A stretch of DNA of 64,000 nt. Source: Eukaryota sp. TZLM1-RC (lineage: Eukaryota > Protista > Metamonada: BaSk clade). The stretch is from NCBI GenBank assembly GCA_040285825.1, contig JAUPSS010000002.1, positions 558,001-622,000 of the forward strand, written 5' to 3'. Under the pieces are notes generated by a model. The model did not search any database. It saw only the letters and a list, made by a program, of their open reading frames with translations, and had not been told where the DNA came from. Below, piece by piece: positions 4,801 to 63,832 of this stretch. The position numbers were made by a program, and so were the translations under genes. How positions within the stretch are numbered: the stretch's first letter is position 1; each line of letters starts with the position of its first letter.

Positions 4801-5935
4801 TGACATTGATTCAGCAATCAATCATTGGAAAGGTTACCTGACTGGTTGTGGGGAATTTAAGTTTGAAGGATTTATGAAGTTTTGCCTATTGCTACGTAAA
4901 AAAGGTAAGCTTTCTGAATTGTTACCTGTTTTAGAAACAGTGAAGAAGCACCATAATCATGAACAATCCCCCCACGTGAACTTTCTCAAAGGAATGTACT
5001 TTCGTTACAGATCATCCTATAAGAAAGCTTTGGAACAGTTTACCTTGGCAAGTCATGATTTAGCTTTGAAAGAAAGTTCGCTTTTGCAAATGGTCACTAT
5101 TTATCTCTATGTTGGTGGAGTTTTTAGAATCCCTGAAAAAAAGTCGATTTTCAAGAGAAAAACTAATGAAAATTCCTCTGCTGTAGATTCAAGCATAAGT
5201 AATGTTGTTACTGACGTTATGAAAAAGCAACACAATGTAGACGTCACGGCCTACACAAAGCAAGATTCAGCCAAGATTGCTCTCCAAACATCTGCTGAAG
5301 AACTCTTGGAACGTATCCCACCTGGTTTTTTTTCTGATGATCGATTACTTGGAATATACAACACTTATTGTAAGTTGATCTCCAATGATAAACCTTTAAT
5401 CACCGATGCATGTTCCTATGCCTTTGCTGCTTACTCTGGTGACATGGACTGGTTTCCTGGTGCTCTGTGCATAGCGGTCTGCTATATACACTCTGATCAA
5501 GCACCCAAAGCCAGAACTATTCTTAAAAGACTATGTAAAACCACCCCCAGTGTCGAATTTGAAGAAGAGTATCAATTGGCTTGTCTGATTTTAGCTCAAC
5601 TGTATATTCAATCAAAAAAGTTTGAATATGCTGTGGAACTTTGTGATAAAGTTTTGGCAATTAATTGTTCTTCATCGTTGGCTTGGGAACTGAAAGGTGA
5701 TATTGATGAAAGTGATCATGCTTATAGAGATGCTGCCCAAAAGTTTGAAAGGGCATGGGCTTTGTGTGCAAAGGAAAGTTCGGTTGTTGGTTATAAATTA
5801 GCATTTAATTATCTAAAGGCCGGGCAGTTATTGGATGCTATTGATGTCTGCCATGCAGTTCTTCGCAACAATCCTGGGTATTCTGCCATTGTAGACGGAG
5901 TGTTGTTGAAAGCAAAAGCAGCAATTAAACCATAA
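1880..5935 (+). CDS. IFT139: IFT-A subunit IFT139/TTC21B-like TPR protein
   Basis: 1351-aa TPR-rich protein; the C-terminus AWELKG..AYRDAA..AW..VGYKLAFNYLKA..DAIDVCH.VL..P.Y is characteristic of TTC21B. Confidence 0.85.
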   Translation: MATLNSASIMASIEFYFLNNLHGHALYLINEALERHGSDLTLRFWRSVCTAFLGLHTESIRDLQRLKESSLTFSVHCALIHIHNLSLFTDEHVLSELVDNCEDAEGNASSQDLLTAARFFWLSNDVIRSRDIIARLFKRTSEPCFESLALRGWLEYSLSLRITEKTRKTERLKKGVKAFKASIKLDDSNPSSRIGHALCLAEAGASNPCSPLQSLINQSDLTAIQECRLLISSKLRDWSTVLSIAESLSRGGSLMGTESAILCLLGKNGEPFSIDIVSQYTSHLVNVLLEKEVGNSTLYSNFALSILVLGKSLEVSNDDVSKQIITHSNRLLYSLTKGDSAAVSSNVHVKLLLVKVKYKLLLEEFDAAKELIQLLNQKLSDQQLKNASTDDVSDDMSFELELISIDCHLSSLESMIINNEIESAASQLSLIQDLIVTIDVESFNSIPFINGYWTILLAKLGYLKVVLGHLTGSLSRSEVLSGLSESIRLCLKYLDFSDCVGISSPVVQFLTFFFDLLSAFFNVYGPVRLSPVASHLPFELPISLMNCLLNLFPTHPVLLMFQSKITCITDPTDSSVAQSIKIIDNLTQSFEDSAQVHLIKAQCLYPMFNIIDQSKLITSSAQNSTSSSRDLVALSHTLETVISFDFSVRKTQMYLFLNSLNCFLKNDFESVLTNFQSFLPGLANFLGQSSKASPDTKGSINQLSIMTRSGFFNGKFLSQSFLIDCFYFASLALYSKTSSVEISRNLLENAVILVQNDDEMVSKLHLYRSIFELSPSISSVPLATDSLAKIKSHSEAFTPGKLIQAEIYLSKDISINKYLKCFSDLLNNVKGSESDVYALQGDAFLKVSRPKAAHESFKKALDFLEKSGNSEHITKKKAFMTAKIANLHCSCHQFASAVSYYETAIDLFPEPRIILDFVHLLRQLNRDDYAKELLDKTNLTDSSNEPVKSSPDDDVMSVENNELLELAKTAEEEGDIDSAINHWKGYLTGCGEFKFEGFMKFCLLLRKKGKLSELLPVLETVKKHHNHEQSPHVNFLKGMYFRYRSSYKKALEQFTLASHDLALKESSLLQMVTIYLYVGGVFRIPEKKSIFKRKTNENSSAVDSSISNVVTDVMKKQHNVDVTAYTKQDSAKIALQTSAEELLERIPPGFFSDDRLLGIYNTYCKLISNDKPLITDACSYAFAAYSGDMDWFPGALCIAVCYIHSDQAPKARTILKRLCKTTPSVEFEEEYQLACLILAQLYIQSKKFEYAVELCDKVLAINCSSSLAWELKGDIDESDHAYRDAAQKFERAWALCAKESSVVGYKLAFNYLKAGQLLDAIDVCHAVLRNNPGYSAIVDGVLLKAKAAIKP

Positions 5936-6939: not shown

Positions 6940-7230
6940 CTATTGTAGAAACTGGAGAATTCAAAAGTAAAACACATTTAAGTAAATTAAGTCGAAGGCC
7001 ACTTTTTTAGTAATTGAACTTTTATTAAACTTACACACTTGACACAATAAACTCATAACTAATGGGACGAAATTCATTGAACCAAGATTTCCTCTATAAA
7101 ATCTTGATCTGCTTGCTGTCTAGCTAAAACTTCTCTAATTCGATTGAAAAACCGAGGTAATCTATTAATAATGGCAAATTGAATTCGAGAGCGCCATTTC
7201 AGGTATATTGCCATTGAATGATTGGGGAAA
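6940..7230 (-). mobile_element. Rearranged fragments of RLE retrotransposon family A, including its 3' end
   Basis: WRSRIQFAIINRLPRFFNRIRE..EEILVQ* matches the end of ORF 62018-63379; RT-region pieces at about 6925-7000. Confidence 0.75.
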
Positions 7231-7555: not shown

Positions 7556-9567
7556 CTCTGAGAGCTTACATAATATTTTTTCTGTGTGTTGCTTAAGCAG
7601 GTTCAACGAGAAAGCAAAACAAATTTTATTACCCTTTCAATATGGTATTAATACCACAGATCTCTTCAGCGATATTTGCTGCTGATGTTTTATTTCGCCA
7701 AAATGAATCCAATGTTTGTATGTCATTGGATTATTAATGCTTTCAATTCACTCAGTCGTCGCAGTATCCATGGTGCTCTATTGCAATATATGCCGGAATT
7801 AATACCGTATTTTCAATCAACATATTGCACATATTCCTATTTTCCTTTTTTTAATAACATTTTGAGTTCATCAAGTGGTGTAAAGCATGGGGATCCGTTA
7901 GTACCTCTTTTGTTTTGTTTGGCCATTCATCCTATTTTACTGCAAATTCAAGAGATGTTTCCTTCACTAAAAATGATTACATATATGGATGATGTTGTGC
8001 TTATTGGTGATTTAAATATTGTGAAACAAGCAACTATATGTTTTAAAGAATTATTTACCAAAATTGGTCTCCGACTTAATTTACCTAAATGTGTTTTGTT
8101 ATCGAATTCTCCAGTTTCCACAATAGTTGATGGTATTGAAATTCAAGCCAAATTATATTCAATTGATGCTATTCGTCATTTGGGTTCGTTTTTAGGAAAT
8201 AATGATGAAATTACCAAAAAATTGTTTGAAAAGTTGAACTCAATTTCTGACAAAATTGACCGAATGATGAATTTAGATATAAAAAAACACATCAAATTTA
8301 CCATTATAAGACGACTGTGTTTTAGTTCCAATTGTAATCATATATATCGATCTACAAATCCTCTTGTCACTAGACCTTTGGCTCAGAAGTTTAATGAGTT
8401 ACGTGCAAAAGTTCTGTCTCAATTACTGGGATGTAAAATGTTTCAACTTCCAGATCATGCTTACCTTAGTCCACATTATGGCGGTTTAGGGTGGACGAAG
8501 GCTTCTATTCTTACCTCGTGTGCTTTTGTTGGTGGATGCAGAGATGCAATCTTTGAGTTTTCCGAAAGTTTTGCAGATTGGGAAAATTTATTGATGACAA
8601 CGCAAAGTTCCACTGTTTTTGCATTAAATGAAGAAATTTCAAAAATTGATGTAGAAAAATGGGGGCGATGTTTTCCCCAATCATTCAATGGCAATATTCC
8701 AGAAAAAATGTTTTAAATTTGAAGTACACTCTTCGAACATTACAGAAACGATTGACTGGATTGTAAGAAAAAGATCTTTATAATAATATATGCAGCTCGG
8801 CTGTTTTAAATCAAGATCTTCACTCATTGTTATTGGAAAAGGGTGTTTGTGAAAACAAGTCGTCAGATTCTTCACTTTTTGTACCACGAAGATTTGGATT
8901 GTGTGCCACTAATGAAGCATTTGTAACAAAAATGAGATTATATTTGAACATCCCCATTAATCAATTATTATCAAAAGAAAAATGTATTTGTTCGAATTCA
9001 CCTCAACTCACTTTGCGCCATGCTCTGAATTGCTCTAAATTGATAACTTATCGTTCTTCATTACATGATGCTGTTAGAGACACTGTTTTCAATATGGCAC
9101 AAACTGCAAGGATATCGTGTATCAAAGAGCCCCTGCTGAAGGAAACACTTTCTCTGAATAATTTTGGTTCTGATGATAGAGGTGATGTATACTGTGATTG
9201 GATTGATAATTCTGAAGCTATTGTTGACTTTGTCTCATGTAATGTTGCAAATGATACTTTGGTTCACAGAAAAAAACTTAATCCTGTGGCTGCTCTGGAT
9301 TTTAAAGCAAAAGAGAAACATAGAAAATATGATAAAGATATTGAAGAGGCTAATGTCGATAGAAATACACAGCTGGTTTTTATTGCTTTCCCATTTTCGA
9401 TAAATGGAAGCTTATCAGTTGAAGCAGAAACTTTTTTGGATGACTTCCAAAAAATGGTGCAAGAAAAAACAATGAAAAGATTTGATATTTTTTTATGGCG
9501 TTCACGGATTCAATTTGCCATTAGTTATGAGTTAATTTAATTAAGTGAGCAAATTCAATAAATACAG
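7556..9567 (+). mobile_element. 5'-truncated, degenerate RT-RLE non-LTR retrotransposon (family A)
   Basis: RT motifs NAFNS, GVKHGDPL and YMDD; CIC..HALNC, HDAVRD, RGDV..D and K.KEKHRKY; frameshift near 8716; 18-bp TSD TTCAYTTCATCCTGTAGT at 7538-7555 and 9568-9585. Confidence 0.9.
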
Positions 9568-9643: not shown

Positions 9644-11077
9644 ATGTCGTTCCCCCATCCTGTGCTTCGTTATGTCCTACATCAGGTTAATACTCTTGAT
9701 GTTTCCTTCTTTTCTCTGAATGAAGCTGGACTCATTTCTGATGGAGCTGCTGAGTTTTTGACCATGCTCAGTGAAGTATCGCCACACGAACAAACCGAAA
9801 TGGTCCTATCTGATTTCAATCAAACATTGAACATTTTTATCGAAGCACTTGCTTTATCTTCCCCTGCACCCCTTGTCCGGGTTTTGACATTTATGTATCA
9901 CCTACTACATAGAGATGAAACTTTGCACATATTTAGTTCATCTGAATCTATTTCTACACTGGTAGATCTTTTTTTAACCATTGCACAGTCGAAAATACCA
10001 CTACCAAAATCACTGGCGTTAATAAATGCGGCTACCATTTTCCGTAGTCTACACAAACCTGCTAATGATCCTCAATTGACAACATTGATATCTTTACTGA
10101 ACTCTGCATTCGATAATATCACCTCGACAACAGACAAGCAGAACCACTCAAGTGATGACCTGTTGATGTTACCTGACGTTTTATTTGCAGAAGCACTGTT
10201 ACGAGCCTTGGCTGAACTCATGAGATGTGTAGACATTAGAAGATCTATCGTGAACCAGGTTGTTCCAAGGCTTCGATTGTTATTTCAAAAGTTCAATTCC
10301 AGTACCCAAATTGTTTATTGTTGTTTGGTTAGTTTGTGGTTGTTGTCCTTTGATTATGATAATTATAATGTTTTCCTCAATCATGGAGTCTTTCAAATCA
10401 TTTCAAACCTTATTACTGTGCAAGCAAGTGATTTTCGTGAACCATTGATTAGATTGTGTCTCTGTATCCTTAATAATGCACTTTCACATGAAATAGATGA
10501 CGTTTCATTAACAATTTTGGACCTTAACCTAGCTAGTCTAGCTCGTAGGTTTATTGAAAGAAAATGGAAAGACACCGATATTAAAGCAGAGAGTACTAGG
10601 TTTTTGAGTAATATTGAACATCTTCAACGGCAATACAGCTCCTGGGATGTCTATGTTAAAGAGATACATAACTTCCGATTTAAATGGTCACCACCTCATC
10701 AGTCTGATATATTTTGGTCTCAAAACATTGCAAAGTTTGAAAGAGACGGGTTTTTATTAGTCCGCATGTTGCTTTCTTATCTAGATTGTTACGGCAAAGT
10801 GTTGTATGGGTCCCTTCCGTCGGACACTTGTATTTCGTTCGAACAACAGGGGAGAACTGTGCAAGTTGATGTAGATAGAGGGTCATTCAATAGAGATAGT
10901 GTCAGTGTTGTATTGAATGATTTGCAAAGATTCATTTCTCAACATCCAGTTGGCAAACAAATTGTAAACAAGTTGAATGGAAAGGAAATAGTGTCACGCT
11001 TATTGATTGATAGTGATTCAAGCATTTCCCGTGATGCTTTAATATGTGTGCAAACTTTGTTAATAACGTTCAAGTGA
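9644..11077 (+). CDS. ATP6V1H: V-type ATPase subunit H
   Basis: Motifs Q..Y.....LWLLSF, R.W.D.DI, SSWD.Y..E....WSPPH.S..FW..N and GK..V..L.GKE.V..L. The ATG at 9644 is preferred because the upstream GTG lies in the retroelement tail. Confidence 0.92.
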   Translation: MSFPHPVLRYVLHQVNTLDVSFFSLNEAGLISDGAAEFLTMLSEVSPHEQTEMVLSDFNQTLNIFIEALALSSPAPLVRVLTFMYHLLHRDETLHIFSSSESISTLVDLFLTIAQSKIPLPKSLALINAATIFRSLHKPANDPQLTTLISLLNSAFDNITSTTDKQNHSSDDLLMLPDVLFAEALLRALAELMRCVDIRRSIVNQVVPRLRLLFQKFNSSTQIVYCCLVSLWLLSFDYDNYNVFLNHGVFQIISNLITVQASDFREPLIRLCLCILNNALSHEIDDVSLTILDLNLASLARRFIERKWKDTDIKAESTRFLSNIEHLQRQYSSWDVYVKEIHNFRFKWSPPHQSDIFWSQNIAKFERDGFLLVRMLLSYLDCYGKVLYGSLPSDTCISFEQQGRTVQVDVDRGSFNRDSVSVVLNDLQRFISQHPVGKQIVNKLNGKEIVSRLLIDSDSSISRDALICVQTLLITFK

Positions 11078-14147: not shown

Positions 14148-14456
14148 TTTTTAGCTAGTGTATATTTTTGATTTGATGATTTTTAGTTTTTTGCAGCATG
14201 ACTGAATTATGGTGACATATAATAAACATTTTTCGCTTTGTGAAAACTTAATTCCTCTGATAAAGCTGCACTAGAGAGAGATGATTCGACGAGTATTTGT
14301 CAGTCCTAAAACATTCAACAGATTTTTTATTGTGTATTTCATATTTGTTGTTGAATAAAAATAGAATCATTGAAAAAAAAGATTGAAGCAATTTCTGGAC
14401 AATTTATTATGGAATTTGAATTTATTTATGTGAATTTTCTGGACGTCATTGAGAAG

Positions 14457-15916: not shown

Positions 15917-15991
15917 TCTGACGAAAATTGACTATAACAATGAAGTAATTTATGTTGATGTAAGGAGATAGAAGTGGAATAATTACAAAAA

Positions 15992-16470
15992 CTATCTACT
16001 ACACAGATATAGAGGCCTTTCATTACCACTCATTCTGGATTCAGTGATCGAAAACATACTAAAACATGTCAGCTTATTTCTTGTCAACAGCTTTTTTGAA
16101 CCATTGTTACTGAATTTACATTCTGGTTAATGCAAGCTACAAAAAGACAACGAGGGTCTTTTCTCGCTTTTCGAATCTGAGATTGGTTACCCTCAAAAAT
16201 GTATAAAGCGATTCAAAACAAACAGGTCATTTTGCAAAACTTATATCCATTTCTTTTGAGAAATTGAAACCATCCAATACCTCAATTCTCTGTTGTTTCA
16301 GATTTTTAGAACCGTTTTTACCATAATCAGCCATTAGTATTAAAGTTTCTTTTGGGTTGCCAAACTGTTGAACAAGGTTTTTTAACAACCAGCTTTCAGT
16401 CTTTTGCTTATGAATAAAGGTTGCATATTATGAATGCTCCACAAGTCAAGACTGTAAACGTCAATAAAAT
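15992..16470 (-). pseudogene. Fanzor C-terminal remnant (family of the 36537 copy)
   Basis: Nucleotide similarity to 36537-37050 (KNLVQQFGNPK, FLKRNG, ..RP.YLCSR*), with several indels. Confidence 0.85.
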
Positions 16471-18087
16471 TTGATTGCATCGGTTGACGAACAATTTTTC
16501 ATTGGTCAACATTGGGTACTTGTCGCATTCTGGATCAAATCCAGAACAGCAAAAGCTTTTCTTTTTGATAGTCTTCGTCATAATGAAGAACAACATCAAA
16601 AAAATTAATTCAATAATTTTTGAAAAACTTTGAATCAATATCAGTCAGAATTTATCTGAATTTTTTCAATCTACTTTGTATGATTGTGGAAAATTCACCT
16701 CATTGTTTGCAAGAAGAATGATCAATTTGTTTTTGCCAAATCAGTTTAATTCAATCGCTTCAGTTCAAATTAAACAATTTGTCAATAAAGACAAAAGATG
16801 TTTCTATAGCTGTGTTGGCAATGAACGAAAATCATTTGAGACAAAGAAATGCTCTTCTGTACAAAAAACCATCAGAAAAATTCGAGCTGATGTACTGAAC
16901 ACACTTTTGAAACGTGTAAAAACCTCTTCAATGAGAATCCGCTGACTCATTAACCTATACCCTTTAATAACACCATCAAATGTCAAATGACAATTTGCTC
17001 TTAGGCTTTTTTTCATATTGATATTGAAACTTTCATGTTGGGTAAAAAAGTCAGTGATGGGGATGAAATAATAGTCATTTCTGCAAGAGAGCATTCCATC
17101 TCTCACTGTCAATCTACAAGAAAGTTTGTTTCTGTTTCTCATATTGTAACCCGAGAACAGATTGAATAAAATCTTTGTTTTTGTGATCTTGTAGAAAAGT
17201 TAACAAGCAGAAATGAACAATATTGTTAAGTTGATGATAAAAATATCACTTTATATCATCATTTCTCTGAAAATGAATTGCTAAATTGATTTAAAAAATT
17301 ACTAGAAACTTACAATCCTCATATAATAGGTGAATTCAATATTGTCAAATTTGACACCCCACATATTATGAAACGTTCTGAAAATGAGGACTTTCTTAAG
17401 GGTGAATTTGATGCTAGTGAATGGATTCAATACTATAATTCAAATCTACTAGTATTGAATCACTACTACTTGAACCCCTTGATTGCTGGTTGATTTATTG
17501 TTGATACTTGTAGTATTAGCACAAATTATTATCAACCACGCAAATTAAAAACAGTTTCTAAAATTTTATTAGGGGAAAGTAAAATTGACCTTGATCCTCA
17601 GTATATTGCAAAGTATTGGAAGGTTCATGCAAATAATCCTTTCTCAGATTTTTCCTTATCCCAAAGAAGAACACAGTTGCAATTTATTGTCAGAGGGATA
17701 CATATTAACCATGAAATTATTTAATTTCTTTAACAATGACCAATTCATGGAAACTGTTAAACATAAACCTTATGATGGTTAGAAGGAGAGTCTAAAAAAT
17801 GTCATCAGAGATCCCAAAATGATTGACGTGATCGCTGAGGTAGTAATTAGGTGTCAGGAAATTTCTATTGTTGGTTTAGAATTCATTTGTGGTTATTATT
17901 TGCATCTTTTTCACTTACACCCTAATGATATTTTACCAAAAATTAAAAAGGAATTATTTCGTGACGGTTTTCTTGTGGTGAAATCTCAAAGTGAGGAGGA
18001 AATTTACCTTAGCCCAAAGACAAAAACAGCTTTACCAGATCCTCGTTGTGCGATTGCTGTAATTCTCTTTCCACCAGTTCAAAGACA

Positions 18088-20174
18088 TGTAGTGGAAAAT
18101 AACTTTATTTTTAATCTGGACTTCAAAAATGCTTTTAATTCTGTAAAGCGAAAAGCAATTTTTGAAGTAATTAAATCTGATTTTCCTGAGCTAACTAGTT
18201 CTTTCTACCAATTTTATGGTAAAGAATCAGATTCAGTATTTAATTCATTTGGTGTAAAATCATCTTCTGGTGTGAAACAAGGTGATCCTTTAGGCTCGTT
18301 ATTGTTTTGTTTAGCTATTCACACAACTTTAGATATCATTGAGCAAAAATATCCTTCTATAAAAATAGTTGCTTATATAAATGATATAACTTTGATTGGT
18401 TCATTTGATTTACTAGAATTGGTTGCTCAAGAAATTGCCGATTCATATAAAAATATTGGGCTTTATCTTAATGCGAGCAAATGCCTTCTGATTGGCTCTT
18501 CTGCTCAAGATCTTGTGATAAACGATTCTATTGTCCCTTTTACTAATTATAGTAGTGATGCTTTTAAGTTCCTTGGTTGTTGGTTAGGAAACGTGCCTCA
18601 AATTCAGAATGAATTGCAAGTTATTTTGGAAAAAATGAAAATTGAACTTGATTCAATTTCTTCTTTTGATTTAGACAACATGTTAAATTTTTCATGCTTA
18701 AAATTTGCTTTACTGGGAGAATAACTAACATTTTGAGATCTTGTGCTCCTTCCAAAGCATTAGGTTTTTGTCGTTCCTTTAATTAATTGAGAACAGCATT
18801 TTTTGCTGTTTTATTGGATGTAGAACGTGGAATATTGAAAAATCACTTATTTTCTTAAGCAAATTTGAGTGGTATTGGATTTACTAAATTTTCTATTCTG
18901 TGTCAATCAGCATTTTTGGGTGGAGGCAAGAATTCTATTTATGAATTTTCTCGTAGATTTCCTGAAGATTCTCATGTGTTAGTTCCCAGTTGCAGTTCAT
19001 ATTTAAACGAATTATCTTGTGAACTTGATAGATTGCCACCACAAATTTACACCAAATGTTTTCCCCAATTAATTCAAGAAATTCCAAACCGATCTCTTTT
19101 AAATTTACCGTTTTGCTGCAAAAACCGTCAACAAAAATTGTCAAGAATTTTTGAAAGCTTGGAGTTATTTTTTTTTATTTGATGTTAGACTTGGCTTGGC
19201 CAAGAAAAAGAATCCCGCTTTTGCAAATCTTTTACAAGATATGTGTGATAGTACTTCTTCTGCCTTAGTAACAACAATTCCTCAAGTATATGGCATTCTC
19301 TTAACTGATTCTGCCTGGACTTTGAATATGAGATTTCCTTCCTTTATTTGGCCTGATAATTTACCTCATAATTTAATTTGAAAATGTTCGCGAAAAATTA
19401 CAGGATTCAAGATTTTGTAGAGCAAATCTTGGTTCAATGATAGTCGTCCCATTAGTAATGAGTTAATTTAATTAAGTGTGCAAATTCAATAAATAATTTT
19501 GTTTACAATAAATTACAATGACTCATTTCTTAAATTGTCAATATTTTATTACTTTTAGAAGCAAAGTTCACGATGCTGTAAGAGACCAATTATATTGTAC
19601 GTGTAAGTTTCATAGAATTGAATCCTTTTTGGAACCTCTGTTGTCAAATCTGTTTGATAGTGAAGATGATTTTCATAAGAATAATAAAAGTGATGTCATA
19701 TTGCTTGGATTGGATGTAACCTTCATTTTATTGGATGTAATGTCTGTTGATCCTTGTAATGCCTCAAATGAAAGGCTTGTAAATTCTGAAATTCACAATG
19801 CTCTTTCAAATGCTGAAAATTTCAAAATCAAAAACTACAATGAACCTTTGTCCAAATTGCCCAGTCAATAGCATGCAAAAAACAATTTGTATCCATTTGT
19901 ATTCTCTTTTTGGTTCACTTGCTCCAACGGCTATACGTTTTTTGTCAGATTTTGAAATGATTGTAAAGAGAAGAACTAATAGAAACTCCAACAGATTGTT
20001 TTGGCAAAATAGAATTGTGTTTTCTTTTTTTCCGGGGTTGTTGAAGATGGTTTCTGATGCTTTGCATTCACTTGGATCTCACTATGAGAGAGTTGCATCT
20101 AGTGTTTTTGTTTTGGGAGAGATGTTTCACTTAGATGTTGATTTATAGGTTTTAAATAAACTTGATAAAAAAAC
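18088..20174 (+). mobile_element. 5'-truncated RT-RLE non-LTR retrotransposon (family C) nested in the Fanzor
   Basis: LDFKNAFNS, GVKQGDPLG, AYIND, HFLNC..HDAVRD and DV....D motifs; A tail; 10-bp TSD TTCAAAGACA at 18078-18087 and 20175-20184. Confidence 0.88.
19403..19509 (+). mobile_element. Short family A 3' end nested in the family C element
   Basis: Matches the family A terminus (..CTTGGTTCAATGATAGTCGTCCCATTAG..AATAAAT); AAATTACA repeated at 19395-19402 and 19510-19517. Confidence 0.75.
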
Positions 20175-22108
20175 TTCAAAGACAAACTTGTTCCAAAAGT
20201 TTTGTGCAAAAAAAGGAATAAGTAATATTTTGTATTACACAATTGCCAAACTGATAGTAAACTTCAAAAAAGCATCCAAGAGTATTTCTTTGATTACTTA
20301 TATCGGTTTGTTGATGTTTTCCATGATGTTGAGAGAAACAACCATGTCGTGAAAAAACAGGATAAGAAAAACTTCTCATCATTCATCAGCAAAGTTAAAT
20401 ATCTCCTTCAAGAAGGACGTAGAGACATTGATAGTGAAACATTTGCAAGGAGAAAAAAAGTCTCGTCAATTACTTCGCTTTTCATTAATGTCCGGAGCCC
20501 TCTTTTACTTCCCAGTAATTCTAAAAGGGAAAAGTATTCAAAATTTAATTTTTCGTCAAAATCAAATTTGTGTTTGAGAGCAATGTTTTAAATTAATAAT
20601 TATTTAGAAGATGAGGAGAGCAAACCCTTTCATGCTCTGCCTTTGAAGAATTCTTGTATTCCCTCGTATATCAGAATTGACAAGACAAGTTTATTGGACT
20701 TGTTCTTTGTTCAATTCAAGGCCATTCTTGGTCAAAGGTCGTCCTACCAATGCAATAATCAAGCTGCTGATTTGGTTTTATGGAATACCTTTTTGAAAAT
20801 GGACCAGATTAAAAACACGGAACCTTATTCAGAAATTCAAAGTACATCATGTCTAGCATCGAGACTGATGGAATATCAGTATCATTCATTCAATCTAGAA
20901 TGGATTTGAAAAAAAACAAGGTAACTGCAAAAGAATTGAAAGATAAAAGAAAAATATATTGATGACCCCAGCATCAATCCTTCTGATTTTCAAGATATGA
21001 CCCTTGCTGCTGCTGATCCAGGTAAATCTGATCTACTCTATTTTTCTGCAAATTTAGCTTCTGGAATGACTCAGTCAAAACAACCTGAGAGAGATAAATA
21101 TGTTCATTTCAGGTTCACTCAAAATCAACGAAGATTTGAGTAGAAATGTTCCAGATTAAAAAGAATAAGAGACAGCATACGGAATGACACTCTTATCACA
21201 ATAAGTAACTCTACTGGTAGAGTAATTATGAACCATCTGATGAGCAACAGCAGAGGATGGATTTAAGCAGCAGTATAATTAATCAAATGACTGAAAGAAC
21301 AATTAGTTTATTAAGAGGAAAAGTACCTCTAAAAAACAATATTCCCCACGAAATTGATAACTCATTAAATTTGAGTAACAATAATCAAAAAACTAAATCT
21401 GTAGCAGAATAAGAAGCAACTGTATCCCAATTCAATTCCAAAAGTTGCAGGTTTGATAGATTTATGGAGTATATTAAACAAAAGAATTTTGTGAATACTA
21501 TCGTTGGTGAAGTCTATCATCAAAAAATACTTAGGAAACTACGATGATGGGCTGAGATTAATCGCACAAGATCTGAGGCAAAGATGATTCAGAGATTCAA
21601 ATCAGTAATAGGTGATACAGGGCAAGTAGTTATCGGAATCGGAGACTGGGAACAACGAAAACACAAGAAATTCAAAGAACCTACGAAAGGAAAAGGTTTG
21701 AGAATTCTATTTAAAAAGGCTGGTTATAAGGTCTTTTGATTGATGAGTTTCAAACCTGTTGTTGTTGCAATTGTAAGAAAGCGGAGAAAACAGTTGAAAC
21801 ACTCCAATGGTGTAAACATCCAAGGCCATGAAAGAGGCATGAGATGTCTATTCGTCACGGGCTTACCATGTGTAAATCATGCGAAAGTTTGTGGAATAGA
21901 GATCGAAATGCTTCGTTGAATATGTTGGCAGTGATGGTAGCACATGTAGAAGGTGGAGATAGGCCGTAATACCTGCAGAGAGTCAAGGTTGAAGGTTCAA
22001 AGATAAAGGTATCAAGGAGAAAATCTTCCACTTTCTCGCAAACTCAGTCCCTCTACATCGGTGTAAAAAGGACACTTTCTTCATTGTTTTAGACATCATC
22101 TGTTACAA

Positions 22109-24564: not shown

Positions 24565-24920
24565 AACATAATCCTGTAAAACCTCTTGAAAACAAAGCGA
24601 AAGATATGAAAGATAGTAAATATGACAATGATATCAAAGAACTAAAGTTGATTGAAATAAACAACTTTTTTATTGCTTTCCCATTGGCAATAAACGGAAG
24701 ACTATCAGTAGAAGCAGCAAACTCTTTGAAAAAATTCCAAAAATTGGTTCAACAAAACAATGGATTTGATGTCTAATTATGGCGTTTTCGAATTCCATTC
24801 GAAATAATTAAAAGATAACCTCGGTTCTTACATCGAATAAGAGAAGGAATGTGAGAAAACAAGCAGATCAGGATTTTGTAGAGGAAATCTTGGTTCAATG
24901 AATTTAGTCCCATTAGTTAA
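24565..24920 (+). mobile_element. Decayed 3' part of RLE retrotransposon family A
   Basis: Nucleotide similarity to the family A C-terminus, ending GAGGAAATCTTGGTTCAATGA..CCCATTAGTT. Confidence 0.75.
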
Positions 24921-25252
24921 GATTATACATAGTGTTGGAGTTCAATATAATTACAAAATTCGTATAAAGTCCTTGTGATTTCAACAATGCCCAGATAACG
25001 GAGGAGTCTATTCCCAGATCGTTTGTTTCTACCTTGTCTGGTGATACCGAAGATTTGTATAATGCCAAACATGAGCACTACGGACCTGAGTTTGTCGAAG
25101 CTTGAAATAGTGGCTCAGTTGACGGCTTTGATGCTTTGACAACGAACGTTTCTTGATGGAAAATTCCTGTTTTTCTGGAAGAAAAATTCTATTTCCGAAA
25201 TTGTGTTGGAGGATTACTTTTTTGAACCTTCAACATCTGACTCTGTACAAGT

Positions 25253-33171: not shown

Positions 33172-34093
33172 ATGTACTTATTGAATTTGCACACTTAATT
33201 AAATTAACTCATAACTAATGGGACGACTATCATTGAACCAAGATTTCCTCTACAAAATCTTGATCTGCTTGCTGTCTAGCTAAAGCTTCTCTAATTCGAT
33301 TGAAAAACCGAGGTAATCTATTAATAATGGCAAATTGAATCCGTGAACGCCATAAAAAAATCAAATCTTTTCATTGTTTTTTCTTGCACCATTTTTTGGA
33401 AGTCATCCAAAAAAGTTTCTGCTTCAACTGATAATCTTCCATTTATCGAAAATGGGAAAGCAATAAAAACCAGCCGTGTATTTCTATCGACATTAGCCTC
33501 TTCAATAATCTTTATCATATTTTCTATGTTTCTCTTTTGCTTTAAAATCCAGAGCAGCCACAGGATTAAGTTTTCTTCTGTGAACCAAAGTATCATTTGT
33601 ATCATTACATGAAACAAAGTCAACAATAGCATCAGAATTATCAATCCAATCACAGTATACATCACCTCTATCATCAGAACCAAAATTATTCAGAGAAAGT
33701 ATTTCCTTCAGCAGGGGCTCTTTGATACACGATATCCTTGCAGTTTGTGCCATATTGAAAACAGTGTCTCTAACAGCATCATGTAATGAAGAACGATAAG
33801 TTATCAATTTAGAGCAATTCAGAGCATGGCGCAAAGTGAGTTGAGGTGAATTCGAACAAATACATTTTTCTTCTGATAATAATTGATTAATGGGGATGTT
33901 CAAATATAATCTCATTTTTGTTACAAATGCTTCATTAGTGGCACACAATCCAAATCTTCGTGGTACAATGGTTACAAAAAGTGAAGAATCTGACGACTTG
34001 TTTTCACAAACACCCTTTTCCAATAACAATGAGTGAAGATCTTGATTTAAAACAGCCGAGCTGCATATATTATTAAAAAGATCTTTTTCATAA
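33172..34093 (-). mobile_element. 5'-truncated family A RLE retrotransposon
   Basis: Near-identical to 61960-62880; small frameshifts. Confidence 0.9.
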
Positions 34094-35687: not shown

Positions 35688-36473
35688 TTAACTCTCTTTA
35701 TCTTCCTTGAATGTCACATTAATCCCACCCAATTGTTGTTGTACCATTTCTTTTATTCTTTCGGTAGCCTTATCCAAAGTTGAGCTAATTAAATCCTCTG
35801 CACTTTGTAGTTCCATCTCTTCATTGTCTTCTTCTGTATTAACAGAATCAGAACAAGAAGAAGAACTAGAGTCGGGGTCATCGACAATAAACTTATCTTG
35901 ACCTAAATCATTATCATCCCTCATAACTTCCTCCTCCTCCTGTTCTTGCACCAGGTCACCTTCTGCTAAGGGAGGAAGATGAGGGCATTGTACAGGTATT
36001 GGAGATTCAGTGGATGTAAAATAGAATTGATGGTTTGGAACAAAAACAGACTTGAACATTTCGTAAAACCGAAAATAAGTATTGGTGTAAAACTCTGTGA
36101 TTGATTGTAAATCAACATGGGAAAATATAGCACTGGAGAATGGGGGGCGATGGACAGCATGTCGAACTAAACATTGTTTGAAGAGATCAAAGCTTCGTTG
36201 AAGAGAAAGAATAAGGTGCATTGACTGACGGTGATGCCATTCAGTTAAGGATAATAATACCGAAATCTTGCGAGGAGAAAGAGCCTGTGTTTTTCCAAAG
36301 TAGAGAAGAGAAAGGTAAAGGTCAAGCAAAATGAGTTTCAAATGATCTTCAGTGTAAGGTATGTGAACAGAGGTAGCAATCAGCGAGCGACGACGTTCGA
36401 TGTCTACACATTGAAGTGCTGTCAGAATCTGCTCCTCACTGAGCATACCATCTAAAAAAAGAGGAGACTCCAT
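35688..36473 (-). CDS. Flagellar central-pair C1a-32/CFAP119 (CCDC189)-like protein
   Basis: HAVHRPPFS..IFS......ITEF..NTYFRFY..FK.VF motif; probable ATG at 36473 (MESPLF). Confidence 0.75.
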   Translation of the reverse strand: MESPLFLDGMLSEEQILTALQCVDIERRRSLIATSVHIPYTEDHLKLILLDLYLSLLYFGKTQALSPRKISVLLSLTEWHHRQSMHLILSLQRSFDLFKQCLVRHAVHRPPFSSAIFSHVDLQSITEFYTNTYFRFYEMFKSVFVPNHQFYFTSTESPIPVQCPHLPPLAEGDLVQEQEEEEVMRDDNDLGQDKFIVDDPDSSSSSCSDSVNTEEDNEEMELQSAEDLISSTLDKATERIKEMVQQQLGGINVTFKEDKES

Positions 36474-36499
36474 TTTGTCAGATAATGTGGAAAATTCCC

Positions 36500-39400
36500 A
36501 TAAATACCGATCTATTTTCGTGTGGAATAAATACAACTATCTACTACACAGATACTGACGTCTTTCATTACTACTCATTCTGGCTTCAGCAATTGCAAAC
36601 ATATTCAGACAAGCCAGCCTATTTCTATTGAAAATCTTTGTTAAGCCTTTGTTACTGAGTTCGCAACTCTCACTATTACATGCTAATAAACCATGACATG
36701 TAGTAACAGGAGTCTTTTCTCTTCTATAGAATCTGGGATTTGTTACTCTCAAAAACGTAGCAACCTTTTCAAAACAAACAGGACATTTTGCTGAAGTGAA
36801 AGCTTCATTAATGATCAATACTTCAAATCCATTCCTTTTCAGAAATTGAATCCATCCAATGCCTCGAGTAGGCCTATGATGTTTTAAATTCTTCGAACCT
36901 TTTTTACTATAATCACTCATTAGTATTAAAATGTCTTTTGGATTGCCAAACTGCTGAACAAGGTTTTTTAACAACCAACTTCCAGTCTTTTGCTTGTGAA
37001 TAAAAGCTTGTATTTTATGAATGCTCCACAAGTCAAGACTGTAAAAGTCAATGGTCAAAAAAACTTGCCGAAGTTTGGCAATCACAAAGTTGGAAAAATT
37101 TATAAAAGTTGCTGAATTGGCGGCAACTGCGGATAATTCGGTGTTTGCATCTTCGATTGTCATTTCGTTAGACTCTATCATTTGGTTCCTGATGTAATCT
37201 AGCTCAGTGTACTTTGTCGCCCATCGTTTTTGCTTTTCATTCATCCTACTTTTCAAAGACCAGGACATCTGAGTCATTCTCAACCATTTGAATTTCTTGT
37301 CTTGATTCATCACCCGACTATTTCTTTGCTGTTCAGTTTCGTGTTCAGGCACCATGGCTAGTTCTTGATCAGTCTTTTTACTCCCAAAATACAATAAATC
37401 ACGTTTTTCAGAATCACAAACAACAATTCGTTTGTCTTGAAAAGTATCAACATCAACATCATCAATATATAAATCAGAAACACTAGCCTTGTTGTCTGGC
37501 TTACATTTCTGACCTGGTAAATCCTGACGAACAAATTCTACTACAATATTAAATCCATCTGTGTGATAATGTTGTTGAATTTATAGCTCTTCTGTTTGAA
37601 GATTGGTTGGTTTAAATCGAGAATATTAGACCAAAAGTCAAATTGCTCAGGTGGTTTGAATTTCGTAATTTGGGCTTGTGTATTGACCATTTTTAATCTC
37701 TGATCAGGCAACAAATCGTCCATGAATGTTTGTCTAATAATTGTCCATATTGTATCTGTATCAATAGGAAAATATCCAGGGCCTACAGTGGTTGAAACAG
37801 GAGAAATATGATAAGGTTTTTTCTCTCTACTGAAGATATACTGGGCAATTGTAATTGCTGGTTTTAGGAATATTTGAGGATCTTTTTCAACAGCGTCTGC
37901 AAGAAAATGTATATCCACTGGAAATATGTTGTCAACTAAATTCTCGTCAGTGACCAAATTCTCAATTTGACAAGTAAATGGCTCAATAAGACCTTCAAAT
38001 ATGTCTCTAAGTTCATTATTTCTGATATCATGTTGTTCACATAAATCGAAAAATTCATCATTCAGAAGGTCTGAAATATTTTCAGGATGATGAAACAAAG
38101 AACTCAAGCAATCTCTATCAACTAAAAACATGTTTTTGAATTGACGAAGCCTAAATCTAAATAGTGAAATAATTGTAGATAATGGCGTTGAGTATCCACT
38201 CAGCTTGTGCATTTCTGATAACACATTTTCCACATCTGGTTTATCAAAAAAGACATTAATAAATCGATTAATATGTTTTTCATAATCTAATTTCAAATTA
38301 TTCTCAAAATTGGCAAACAGTACTGGAACCATATACTCAGGTGGTCTACTGAATTTATCAGTTGGAAATCGTGGAAACTGTTCAGGCTTGTATCTTAAGT
38401 GATCAAGATAACTCAATGTTTCGTTTAATTTTTGTTGCTCAAAGGTAGTTCTTAAAGTATAATCTCCTTCACCATAAACAAAGTCTTCAAAATCCTGTGG
38501 AAATGCACTTCTTGGTTTTACCATTTTTTGCTCATAATACTCAGCTGAAATATAACGAATTCCGGCCATTAATGATTCATATAATTTGGCAGATATTCGT
38601 GGCAGTAGTAAATTACGTTCAAATCGGGACTGTAAATACAGCTTTAAGCAACATGTGGTGTGAATACGTAATTGTTGAAAATTTAATGCAGTTTCTTTCG
38701 ATTTGAATATCACATTTGAATGTTTAACCATTGAGTTGACGGTTGCTCGAATGGTTTTATAAGATGATAAAATAAATTTGTCTTTCTGAAACAGCACGAA
38801 AAGTTTCAGACAAAGGACACAATAATGAAGCCCATATTGAATCAAATTTTGTATCAGAGGAGGTGTAGCTAAACAATCAATTGGCAAAATATGGGAAAAT
38901 TCCCTATGAAGTTTGAGTTTCTTTTCATTTATCATTTTATATGCCAGATTGCCTAATCCATGTCCGTAGAGTATTTTTATGAATTTTTTGGCAAATACCA
39001 AAGTATCTAAAAGAAAAATGCCATTTTCCCTGATGACAACTTGTCTCCATCTCGGTGAAAGTTGATTGAGTACATCAATTGCTGTATCATCTGGAACAGT
39101 GGGAAATGGTAAATCAAAATAGTTTAATCTATTTTTAAAACCTGTAAATCAAACTGCACTAAATTGTGATTAAGAACACAATGGGGTTGATGATTATTAA
39201 TAAGGTTTAAAAACCTACAAAGCAAGGTTTTTTCGTCAGAGAACATTTTTCTGCCTGAATATCCATATCAATGTCTGGTAATCTGATTTGAGGACTCATT
39301 CTCAATATAAGTGAAAATTAACTCTCCAAAAAGAAAACATGACGGTCAAACTTACCAATAACTATTGAAACTAAAAACACTTTCTGATCTGAAATCCTCT

Positions 39401-40550
39401 CATCCATTTGCTCATCAGTTTTTTTCAAAAGAATTTGCACCCTCTTTGCTTTATTTGTTGATAATCTCGTCAGGAGGGAGAAATTGGCCATCATGATTTT
39501 GGTAAAGGTGACCATCCTGATAGGTTTCAAGATCAAAGCACATAACAGTGGGAAGATTTCGATTTGAGGTCATTGATATGAATTGAATCAATGGATCAGG
39601 CTTGAAACCACTTCGACTTGGCTCAATTTTTTTTGACCATACTCGGTTTTAATGGTTGTTTTGTCAAAATCTTCCTGTTCTCGTTATTCAACATTTCTCG
39701 ATACAAATTTCTCGGTTCAGTGCTTTTTGTTGTTTTTTCCCTTACGCATTGATGTTTCTGGTCAAAAATCGCTTTCCTAATAATTTTTGATGGAGGAGTT
39801 GATTTAAAATTAGATCTTCTCTTTTTGGGACCAGGATTTGCTTCCACATCTCCATCCATTGTTAAATCAACAGTAAATGTGTTTGTTGATAGAAGATGTT
39901 GGCAGCTTCTGGATTGAAAACATAAATTATAAACATAATAATCAAACTCGACGTTATCAAAATAACAGTTGAAGACACAACATCCCATATCTAAAGTGCC
40001 AGTACTTAAACCACAAAAAACAACAAACTCAAAAACATCAAAATAACAATTCAAAACAAAACATAAACAAAAGAAACATCCCATATCCTCAGAACAAGTA
40101 TTTAAACCACAAAAAAACAACAAACTCAAAAACATCAAAATAACAATTCAAAACAGAACATAAACAAAAGAAACATTCCGTATCTAAGGTGATAAGCACC
40201 ATGGCTGATTCAACAGCACCCATATCATGACTCACATGATGACTAAAAAAATGCAATACTCTACCCCCACGGAAGGATCAGAACGACGATTCTGATAGGA
40301 AATCGAGGCTCTGACCTTCCGTTCATGCCTGTAAAGCAGGATGACTGTTCCTGACTGAGGAGTTCGGGAGGAAGTACTCTGCTGTTCTGTGAAGAACAGG
40401 TTGAAGGAGGAGGTGGGTCCGTAACCTCGTTATCCTTTTTCTCGTCTGGCTGCATAATGTTAGAAGAATGGGAAGAATCAAGATAATCTCGCTGTCTGAC
40501 ACGATGTCTGACATGCTGATTGAAATTTCAAATTGATTGCTAATTTCCAC
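36500..40550 (-). mobile_element. Fanzor element encoding [Cys/Phe-rich repeat peptide]-2A-[NLS]-PolB-type exonuclease-Fanzor, with several frameshifts and stops
   Basis: 2A motif at 39827-39868; ExoI VMCFDLETY at 39520-39546; ExoII DEKTLLCRFL..PHCVLNHNLVQFDL at about 39145-39240; ExoIII-position LIQYGLHY; RuvC-I IVVCDSEKRDLLY at about 37390-37430; INEAFTSAKCPVC; HGLLAC..C..FNRNRLACLN. The left boundary is approximate. Confidence 0.85.
39955..40186. repeat. About 96-bp tandem repeat (two full copies and one partial) coding for Cys/Phe-rich units on the minus strand
   Basis: TAAACCACAAAAAACAACAAACTCAAAAACATCAAAATAACAATTCAAAAC..CATAAACAAAAGAAACAT at about 40007 and 40103. Confidence 0.85.
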
Positions 40551-40879: not shown

Positions 40880-41720
40880 GTGTTTTCAAAACCTGAGAAT
40901 GTGGAGGGGCTGAGTTATAAAAATCTGATTTTTGAAATCAGAAATGATGAACTCTTGTGCGATACTGGTCTTTCTCCACCATTGACATGTGCTTTCATCT
41001 CTGCCACCATTTTTACCGAAGCATTTCGATGTCTATTCCACCAATTTTCTGATGATTTTGCCATAGTAGGATAAGTTCGCTATAAATGTACATCTTATGC
41101 CTCTTCCATGGCCTTGTGTTTCTGCATCATCGCAACGTTTCTACTACTTTCTCTGCTTTCTTGCAATTATATCAACAACAACTAGTTCGAAACTCATCAG
41201 TTAAAAAACCCTTATCACCAACTTTTTTAAATTCAATTCTTAAACCTTGTCCTGTGGTAAGTTCTTTGAATTTCATGTGTTGTTGTTCCCAGTCTCTAAT
41301 TCCTTCTGAATAAAGTTTGGTGTGATTAATCTTATCCATTTTTTAAATAGTGTTTCACAAAAACAAATCAGCATTTTCGTCATTACTGTAAGCTGTTGAC
41401 TTTTTATCAACGGTATTCTGGTATTTGGTAAAATACAATTCCTATAAATTTGTCTTATTCATTCTACTGAAAGATAACATTCAAGATTTCTTTAAGAGCA
41501 GATCTGTTTTAAATAAAAATAATGCATTTAAACATAAATTTTAATTCTCAATACCACTTTTCCGTACAATAACTGGGAAGTAGATGATGTAGATGAGTAT
41601 CAATTATTAAGAAATTCGCAGAGTGACTGTTACTGGGTATTTATATGTTAAATTGATCAAATGTTCTCCTGTTGATTCAAGTCTAGAAATTTAATGACGC
41701 TCTGCACTCATAGAATCAAT
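40880..41720 (-). pseudogene. Decayed Fanzor C-terminal half (family of the 17230-22065 copy)
   Basis: DWEQQHMKFKELTTGQGLRI..TDEFRTSCC*YNCKKAEK..RPWKRH and WWNRHRNASVKM..AHVNGGERP; shared non-coding motif AACTCAGYCCCTCYACAT. Confidence 0.8.
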
Positions 41721-61959: not shown

Positions 61960-63832
61960 ATGTATTTATTGAATTTGCACACTTAATTAAATTAACTCAT
62001 AACTAATGGGACGACTATCATTGAACCAAGATTTCCTCTACAAAATCTTGATCTGCTTGCTGTCTGGCTAAAGCTTCTCTTATTCGATTGAAAAACCGAG
62101 GTAATCTATTAATAATGGCAAATTGAATCCGTGAACGCCATAAAAAAATATCAAATCTTTTCATTGTTTTTTCTTGCACCATTTTTTGGAAGTCATCCAA
62201 AAAAGTTTCTGCTTCAACTGATAATCTTCCATTTATCGAAAAAGGGAAAGCAATAAAAACCAACTGTGTATTTCTATCGACATTAGCCTCTTCAATATCT
62301 TTATCATATTTTCTATGTTTCTCTTTTGCTTTAAAATCTAGAGCAGCCACAGGATTAAGTTTTCTTCTGTGAACCAAAGTATCATTTGCAACATTACATG
62401 AGACAAAATCTACAATAGCTTCAGAATTATCAATCCAATCACAGTATACATCATCTCTATCATCAGAACCAAAATTATTCAGAGAAAGTGTTTCCTTCAG
62501 CAGGGGCTCTTTGATACACGATATCCTTGCAGTTTGTGCCATATTGAAAACAGTGTCTCTAACAGCATCATGTAATGAAGAACGATAAGTTATCAATTTA
62601 GAGCAATTCAGAGCATGGCGCAAAGTGAGTTGAGGTGAATTCGAACAAATACATTTTTCTTTTGATAATAATTGATTAATGGGGATGTTCAAATATAATC
62701 TCATTTTTGTTACAAATGCTTCATTAGTGGCACACAATCCAAATCTTCGTGGTACAATGGTTACAAAAAGTGAAGAATCTGACGACTTGTTTTCACAAAC
62801 ACCCTTTTCCAATAACAATGAGTGAAGATCTTGATTTAGAACAGCCGAGCTGCATATATTATTATAAAGATCTTTTTCATACATTCCAGTCAATCGTTTC
62901 TGTAATGTTCGAAGAGTGTACTTCAAATTTAAAACATTTTTTTCTGGAATATTGCCATTGAATGATTGGGGAAAACATCGACCCCATTTTTTTACAGCAA
63001 TTTTTGAAATTTCTTCATTTAATGCAAAAACAGTGGAACTTTGCGTTGTCATCAATAAATCTTCCCAATCTGCAAATCTTTCGGAAAACTCAAAGATTGC
63101 ATTTCTGCATCCACCAACAAAAGCACACGAGGTAAGAATAGAAGCCTTCGTCCACCCTAAACCGCCATAATGTGGACTAAGGTAAGCATGATCTGGAATT
63201 TGAAACATTTTACATCCCAGTAATGGAGACAGAACTTTTGCACGTAACTCATTAAACTTCTGAGCCAAAGGTCTAGTGACGAGAGGATTTGTAGATCGAA
63301 ATATATGATTAAAATTGGAACTAAAACACAGTCTTATAATGGTAAATTTGATGTGTTTTTTTATATCCAAATTCATCATTCTGTCAATTTTGTCAGAAAT
63401 TGAGTTTCAACTTTTCAAACAATTTTTTGGTAATTTCATCATTATTTCCTAAAAACGAACCCAAATGACGAATAGCATCAATTGAATATAATTTGGCTAG
63501 AATTTCAATACCATCAACTATTGTGGAAACTGGGAAATTCGATAACAAAACACATTTAAGTAAATTAAGTCGGAGACCAATTTTGGTAAATAATTCTTTA
63601 AAACATACAGTTGCTTGTTTCACAATATTTAAATCACCAATAAGCACAACATCATCCATATATGCAATCATTTTTAGTGAAGGAAACATCTCTTGAATTT
63701 GCAGTAAAATAGGATGAATGGCCAAACACAACAAAAGAGGTCCTAACGGATCTCCTTGCTTTACACCACTTGATGAACTCAAAATGTTATTACCAAAATG
63801 TAAATTAGAATATGTGCTATATGATGATTGAA
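61960..63832 (-). mobile_element. 5'-truncated family A RT-RLE retrotransposon, best-preserved copy
   Basis: GVKQGDPLGPLL and AYMDD; one frameshift near 63410; intact RLE C-terminus; 11-bp TSD AAGTAAAAGTT at 61949-61959 and 63833-63843. Confidence 0.92.

Follow-up and report, generated by a model that had tools for sequence, protein, structure and literature searches.

A decayed mobile element of Skoliomonas litria points to an old fusion of a protease-like region, a polymerase-type exonuclease and a Fanzor1 nuclease

The window analyzed here is a 64,000-nucleotide stretch of contig JAUPSS010000002.1 of assembly GCA_040285825.1 (positions 558,001 to 622,000) from Eukaryota sp. TZLM1-RC, the type strain of the soda-lake metamonad Skoliomonas litria (PMC11603281). 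Proteins encoded in the window match the NCBI models of "Eukaryota sp. TZLM1-RC," and abundant transposon debris is present in the form of long interspersed nuclear element (LINE) fragments, long terminal repeat (LTR) elements and several Fanzor relics. The subject of this report is one of these relics, a 5′-truncated element that a sequence-only reading of the DNA had described as an exonuclease-Fanzor fusion interrupted by a retroelement. The segment is very probably a dead copy of a multicopy mobile element whose progenitor encoded a single-protein fusion, arisen once, of a protease-like region, a family B DNA polymerase (PolB)-type exonuclease and Fanzor1.

The features of the element are collected in Table 1. 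The motifs quoted in the sequence-only reading (FNIVKFD for ExoII, KLKTVSKILLGESKIDL at 17542-17592, ADPGKSDLLY and WNRDRNASLN) are all located where that reading placed them, and the position of the ExoIII motif YCQRD is also correct with a reading frame that is off by one. Its description was accurate for the motifs, the target site duplication (TSD) and the lack of DNA identity to a second element discussed below, and was wrong on two points. ExoI was reported to be missing at the truncated 5′ end, but DIET is found in the same frame as ExoII and homology to paralogous copies reaches 16461. The retroelement does not start right after the exonuclease, and Fanzor N-terminal sequence occupies the interval ahead of the insertion. 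The 5′ truncation is further upstream, ExoI is present, and a third, protease-like domain lies in front of the exonuclease. Relative to the four-copy majority frame, 14 frameshifting indels and 16 stops were counted in the window copy, in addition to the LINE and the 5′ truncation. The window copy is a dead fossil, and its broken frame cannot yield protein.

Table 1. Coordinates of the element, its parts and related features. Positions refer to the window unless a locus (L) is named.
Feature	Position	Strand	Remarks
Element, window copy	16461-22108	+	5′-truncated, later split by a LINE
Protease-like (putatively Ulp1/CE-clan-like) remnant	16461-16950	+	Homology to L002 from 10852 on and to P0039 residues 280-474; HWV 16510-16518, DCG 16682-16690
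Decayed PolB-type DEDDy 3′-5′ exonuclease	17005-17760	+	ExoI DIET 17020-17031; ExoII FNIVKFD 17335-17355; ExoIII YCQRD 17685-17699 (frameshifted)
Fanzor1 N-terminal region, first part	17761-18087	+	Collinear with L002 to 12483 and with L001 9406-9699; ends in TSD copy 1
Inserted 5′-truncated non-LTR (LINE-like) retroelement	18088-20174	+	RVT_1, A-run, TSD; absent from L002 at this point
Miniature inverted-repeat transposable element (MITE)-like repeat, ~90 bp	19407-19495		Nested in the LINE 18088-20174
Remaining Fanzor1 frame	20175-22066	+	89.7% DNA identity to L002 12471-14424; stop 22064-22066
RuvC-I (ADPGKSDLLY)	21012-21041	+	Fanzor1 motif
IDEF (rearranged Glu)	21739-21750	+	Fanzor1 motif
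CKSC	21871-21882	+	Fanzor1 motif
RuvC-III (WNRDRNASLN)	21892-21921	+	Fanzor1 motif
Noncoding 3′ terminal module	22067-22108	+	The window, L002 and L003 copies are homologous up to this point; flush with host ATG 22109
Terminal module, other positions	15917-15975	-	Behind a 36537-type 3′ end
	L002 ~14380-14423
	L003 ~19640-19681
	L005 ~5310-5360		Behind a 36537-type 3′ end
Genes behind the family's 3′ ends	ATG 22109		Annotated host gene
	L002		Hsp70-like
	L003		ARS2-like
36537-type element	36540-39600	-	2A-exonuclease-Fanzor family; relatives in Skoliomonas sp. GEM-RC1

The Fanzor frame of the window copy is split by the retroelement insertion. A match to RVT_1 (56.8 bits) is located within the insertion at 18095-18583 and an A-run at 20167-20173 lies near its 3′ end. 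The 10-bp TSD TTCAAAGACA flanks the A-tailed insertion at 18078-18087 and 20175-20184, as the sequence-only reading had proposed. Paralogue L002 is continuous exactly across this point, and removal of the retroelement at the TSD restores collinear Fanzor sequence. The reverse transcriptase, the A-rich 3′ tail, the TSD and the empty site in L002 identify the insertion as a non-LTR retrotransposon. Further copies of the LINE are present elsewhere in the window and at L002.

Protein searches returned the models P0039 and P0040 in addition to the fragment model P0034, and the loci of these models gave three more copies of the element in the same genome (L001, L002, L003). BLASTN shows that the copies are 85-90% identical and strictly collinear over the protease-like, exonuclease and Fanzor parts. 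Window 16461-18085 corresponds to L002 10852-12483 and window 20170-22108 to L002 12471-14424, making L002 the uninterrupted "empty site" of the LINE insertion. L001 and L003 are interrupted at other places by LTR retrotransposons, so that the foreign insertions differ among the four copies, and the flanking genes differ among the paralogue loci. The collinearity of four copies with different insertions indicates that the exonuclease segment belongs to the element and not to a neighboring host pseudogene. The copies are 5′-truncated at differing points and have a common 3′ end.

In L002, a frame that starts at an ATG spans the protease-like region, ExoI, ExoII and ExoIII and enters the Fanzor N-terminus. 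It contains two stops private to L002, which are followed by two private frameshifts. When the four copies are combined by majority, the result is one 1,466-codon frame that is open across the joint between exonuclease and Fanzor. Three internal stops are found in the majority frame; one is a mixing artifact and two are common only to the window copy and L001, with sense codons in L002 and L003. The two common stops are a TCG to TAG change and a TGG to TAA/TAG change. Their sharing suggests that elements already defective were still multiplying, or else that gene conversion took place. The L002 upstream region was compared with the 3′ end, and no terminal inverted repeat turned up. A word-based search that used the exonuclease portion of model P0025 recovered only P0025 itself, and a metagenome scan with a joint-spanning piece found no relative, a result that says little about the spread of the family.

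The window exonuclease piece scores 15.9 bits with PF03104, which is under the Pfam cut-off of 23, and the paralogues score above it (L001, 38.6 bits; P0040, 32.7 bits). The protein identity between the window exonuclease and P0040 is 77% (E = 7e-92). The PolB exonuclease match exceeds chance, but only by way of the paralogues, and the window piece alone is weak evidence. A profile of the Skoliomonas exonuclease domains was compared with the PDB and matched yeast Pol delta (E = 3.8e-12) and E. coli Pol II (E = 3.7e-11), with lower matches to herpesvirus, human Pol delta, T4/RB69 and archaeal PolB enzymes. P0040 alone aligns best with Pol delta, including the stretch around ExoIII. The window copy has the catalytic residues of ExoI (D-x-E), ExoII (N-x(2-3)-F/Y-D) and ExoIII (Y-x(3)-D). 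None of the five DEDDy codons is lost in the window copy, L001, L002 or the majority sequence, and L003 has a Tyr to His change. The ExoI-III motifs, the DEDDy residues and PF03104 are common to the element and the proofreading domain of family B polymerases such as the Pol delta catalytic subunit (PDB 3IAY) and E. coli Pol II. The element differs from these enzymes in having the exonuclease domain only, without the N-terminal domain, palm, fingers and thumb, and is not a polymerase. The scan of the paralogue proteins gave no Pfam match to a polymerase domain, and Fanzor N-terminal sequence begins within ~15 residues of ExoIII.

The C-terminal 338 residues of L002, equivalent to window 21100-22063, match Parasitella PpFz1 (E = 6.8e-22) and Spizellomyces SpuFz1 (E = 3.6e-19), and L002 scores 30.2 bits with PF07282 against a cut-off of 26.3. 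The PpFz1 match includes the motif LIDEFRTS (IDEF-TS in this family) that bears the rearranged glutamate, a feature described for Fanzors in PMC10530073. The preceding 194 residues match SpuFz1 from about residue 140 (E = 0.0017) and GtFz1 (E = 0.035). The SpuFz1 match places the start of Fanzor homology directly after ExoIII, which means that the linker is short. The Fanzor1 catalytic codons Asp, rearranged Glu and Asp are present in the window copy, and the family has a zinc-ribbon (TNB) region. The 3′-terminal 230 nucleotides are highly conserved in three copies, and RNAalifold analysis of these near-identical sequences gave no usable covariation. Rfam and tRNA scans of the window produced no match.

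A region of ~460 residues lies N-terminal to the exonuclease in the same frame. Its HW and DCG motifs occur in the right order for the His, Asp and Cys catalytic residues. An Atlas feature search gave a score of 0.85 with all ten of the best named matches belonging to C48, and an Atlas structure search gave TM values of 0.51-0.57 to C48 and SseL models, as the matched models score. A weak match to ElaD/SseL was also found (E = 0.0067), and searches of the region against Pfam (using P0039) and against PDB sequences gave no match. The identity of the region as an Ulp1/C48, SseL-type CE-clan protease is a lead that comes from the Atlas searches. The canonical 2A sequence D(V/I)ExNPGP does not occur in the family's frame, where only PPGP at the start and ENPLT before ExoI were seen. 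The L002 frame begins at 10001-10030 with MSDAPPGP, which faintly resembles the NPGP end of 2A but lacks the essential Asn; this start is covered by L002 alone and has LINE sequence immediately upstream.

Ka/Ks, the ratio of nonsynonymous to synonymous substitution, was calculated for pairs of copies, a check that the sequence-only reading had proposed. The whole-frame values are 0.41-0.62, below the 0.85-1.09 obtained for two wrong frames used as controls. The Fanzor part has values of 0.32-0.66 (binomial p from 0.033 down to 1e-11) and the exonuclease part has values of 0.42-0.79 (binomial p = 0.002-0.22). Ratios below those of the controls indicate that part of the divergence arose in functional lineages. 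The signal is clear in Fanzor and modest in the exonuclease, and the copies diverged partly under purifying selection.

A second element in the window, the 36537 element, was described in the sequence-only reading as having the same domain order and a similarly short linker with no nucleotide identity to the element studied here. There is no blastn match between the two, the domain order is the same, and the joint is homologous. Relatives of the 36537 type have PF03104 matches of 35-54 bits ahead of the Fanzor sequence (45-54 bits in gene models of a sister species). At the protein level, the two families share 20-29% identity across the exonuclease and 17-21% across Fanzor. The remaining families are 34-38% identical to each other in the exonuclease and 26-38% in Fanzor, which makes the studied family the outlier in both parts. 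Profiles of the two families were aligned with hhalign in one alignment of 314 columns that passes from ExoII through ExoIII and the joint to the Fanzor N-terminus (probability 96.5%, E = 7e-10). A stretch just past ExoIII is conserved in both families (L/M-K-L-F .. F-Q/N-K/N-D-K/Q-F). This family comparison consists of identity matrices and profile alignment and is unrooted. The families differ in front of the exonuclease: the 36537 type has ~100 residues before ExoI without a protease-like domain there and a canonical 2A (DVEANPGP in the 36537 element, upstream of its exonuclease), whereas the studied family has the ~460-residue protease-like region and no canonical 2A.

A single fusion event predicts a homologous joint, and the unbroken alignment through the joint supports a single old fusion. 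A host polymerase pseudogene that other copies lack was the alternative named in the sequence-only reading. In that case, 17005-17760 would be a fragment of a Pol delta-like host pseudogene that came to lie beside a Fanzor relic by chance, which agrees with the window exonuclease piece falling under the Pfam threshold and with cellular Pol delta being the nearest solved relative. However, the segment is found at the same place and in the same frame in the three other copies at unrelated loci, and it is followed by the Fanzor N-terminus rather than by a polymerase palm or fingers. The differing flanking genes also argue against segmental duplication of a single region as the source of the copies. 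The host pseudogene was rejected because the paralogous copies carry the exonuclease collinear with Fanzor, and chance juxtaposition is extremely improbable. An old, maintained fusion, as the sequence-only reading had proposed, is supported by the four collinear copies, the one open majority frame, purifying selection and the alignment of the joint across families. Independent capture of a PolB exonuclease by each family, with the recurrence reflecting repeated selection, is also improbable. The ExoIII region of the studied family is closer to Pol delta than that of the 36537 type, and an exonuclease identity of only 20-29% in an unrooted comparison leaves room for two captures, but a single profile alignment covers the joint, the post-ExoIII stretch and the Fanzor N-terminus, and the pattern of divergence is parallel in the exonuclease and Fanzor parts. 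The sequence comparisons support an old fusion common to both families as a better fit than chance juxtaposition or two captures.

Direct observations are the collinearity of the copies, their one ancestral frame, the identities of the domains and the signal of selection. The progenitor protein would have had ~1,460 residues: ~460 with a predicted Ulp1-like cysteine-protease fold, then a Pol delta-like DEDDy exonuclease, and then a complete Fanzor1, with essentially no linker between the exonuclease and Fanzor1. The fusion would have arisen once and been kept while both families diverged, because it is homologous, joint included, to the 36537-type fusion. Two other views of the protein were considered. 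Cleavage of the long frame after translation, by the protease-like domain or at skipping sites, would let the exonuclease and Fanzor act separately. The protease-like domain is in the same frame, and the 36537-type element has its 2A upstream of the exonuclease, but NPGP is found nowhere in the studied family's frame, no cleavage motif was identified, and the ~15 residues by homology from the end of the exonuclease to the start of Fanzor offer little room for a cleavage site. A polyprotein is therefore a rather unlikely form for the product. The exonuclease could also be a catalytically silent scaffold, for example a module that binds DNA or RNA ends, in keeping with the higher Ka/Ks of the exonuclease compared to Fanzor and with the loss of the ExoIII Asp from the 36537-type copy in the window. 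The five DEDDy residues are kept in the majority sequence, in three of the four copies and in the better-preserved 36537-type relatives, and a silent domain is unlikely. The single-protein fusion with an exonuclease that keeps its catalytic residues is the preferred reading.

The proofreading activity of Pol delta removes nonhomologous 3′ tails in recombination. A similar activity tethered to Fanzor1 may trim the 3′ ends at a break and so prevent the exact religation that would recreate the target. The same trimming would take off the short 3′ tail without homology to the element-bearing copy and so let repair copy the element in. The break itself would be made by Fanzor1 cutting the matching empty site under the guidance of an omegaRNA from the 3′ end of the element, by analogy to TnpB and Fanzor (PMC10432273).

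Several points weigh against this reconstruction. An exhaustive search with the open 105-residue piece at window 20592-20906 returned a single close fragment model, P0034, and four weak and probably spurious matches. No intact copy of the family was found, and L002, the best, has three premature stops and four frameshifts compared to the majority frame. The selection signal in the exonuclease part is modest when taken alone. In addition, 3′-5′ trimming would shorten the 3′ tails that recombination needs, and a role for the exonuclease in homing is one of several possibilities.

Three copies keep the 3′ end of the family, and in each of them it stops 0-1 nucleotides short of the ATG of an annotated gene on the same strand. 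The terminal module (~45-58 nucleotides, core ATTGTTATAGNCA) is also found behind two 36537-type 3′ ends, where it again abuts an ATG (window 15916 and a ThiF-like gene at L005). In five of five cases, the module is flush (0-1 nucleotides) with the ATG of an annotated host gene on its own strand. Neither the window nor the fetched loci contain the core motif ATTGTTATAGNCA anywhere else. This restriction to Fanzor ends led to the rejection of a general host promoter motif as an explanation of the module. The Skoliomonas exonuclease-Fanzor elements could conceivably target start codons, and we put this forward as a doubtful but possible extension. The module would land in the orientation of the host gene, take the place of the displaced promoter and 5′ untranslated region and end the omegaRNA scaffold, the first codons of the host gene would serve as the guide, and the fused exonuclease would trim the nonhomologous 3′ tail that the cut leaves, allowing the broken empty site to prime copying of the element in a natural cut-trim-copy form of homing. 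If it is general, flush placement at host start codons would represent a way of inserting that is new for elements of this class.

Two 36537-type copies have no module, and their ends are located ~16-86 nucleotides upstream of a same-strand host gene: window 36473-36540 (minus strand), ahead of a CLAMP gene, and L004 4271-4357, ahead of a DUF4200 gene. Following the Fanzor stop codon of the 36537 element (36537-36539, minus strand), the open frame of the CLAMP-domain host gene continues in frame without a gap, and its first ATG is at 36473. Fanzor 3′ ends point into a nearby gene start in all seven cases examined.

Other relics in the window are related to these families. A 5′-truncated fragment of a 36537-type Fanzor C-terminus at 16000-16466 (minus strand) abuts the studied element head-to-head at its truncated 5′ end. 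The two meet at ~16461-16466 and together fill the spacer between divergent host genes with ATGs at 15916 and 22109. A third relic at 40950-41590 (minus strand) is related to the studied family, with 79% DNA identity to L002 over 340 nucleotides and 40-65% protein identity to the window copy. In this relic an internal deletion has brought a WED-like region up against the second half of RuvC. No exonuclease part is visible. The repeat nested in the LINE belongs to a 90-120-bp family with other window copies at 7021-7141 (minus strand), 9518-9565, 24835-24924, 33174-33297 (minus strand) and 61962-62085 (minus strand), and with copies beyond the window at L002 9800-9923 and 4844-4939 and at L003 4023-4113. 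The copies are 88-96% identical, except for an 81% match at 24835-24924, and the family looks like a MITE or a short interspersed nuclear element. In the L002 LINE, the sequences that flank the LINE-nested copy have an 8-bp overlap, as expected of a target duplication. The repeat has no Rfam or tRNA match.

The C-terminal ~740 residues of the studied family, with the RuvC-I Asp, the Glu, the RuvC-III Asp and the zinc-ribbon/TNB, are the part it has in common with known Fanzor1 proteins such as SpuFz1 and PpFz1 (PMC10432273, PMC10530073, PMC11423790). The family differs from these in carrying ~720 extra N-terminal residues with the protease-like domain and the PolB-type exonuclease. Known Fanzor N-termini are described in the portions of the same papers that were covered as disordered regions and nuclear localization signals. 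No enzymatic N-terminal domain was found in those portions, and "exonuclease" occurs 0 times in the two of them searched for that term. A term search of PMC10530073 for fusions, polymerase and protease found no natural N-terminal enzyme domain in the text covered. Full-text literature searches that paired Fanzor with exonuclease terms brought up nothing beyond reviews and engineered fusions, and no paper on the exonuclease-Fanzor fusions of this genome was found. Engineered exonuclease-nuclease fusions are used in genome editing with aims related to the trimming proposed here, for example TREX2-SpCas9 (PMC13370227; reviewed in PMC11471210). Like the studied family, they tether a 3′-5′ or other exonuclease to an RNA-guided nuclease for immediate end processing. 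They are laboratory constructs with unrelated exonucleases, whereas the studied family is natural and transposon-borne, with a polymerase-derived domain and a proposed effect on repair.

Fanzors are eukaryotic RNA-guided nucleases that are being engineered as compact editors, and editors are often improved by an added exonuclease. Nature appears to have joined a polymerase proofreading domain to Fanzor once and to have kept it until the families were ~20% identical. This long retention argues that the exonuclease is useful to the element, and the families provide natural, co-evolved designs to try. Their accessory domains are a hint that the ends are processed once the cut is made, which may help with the question of what Fanzors do for transposons.

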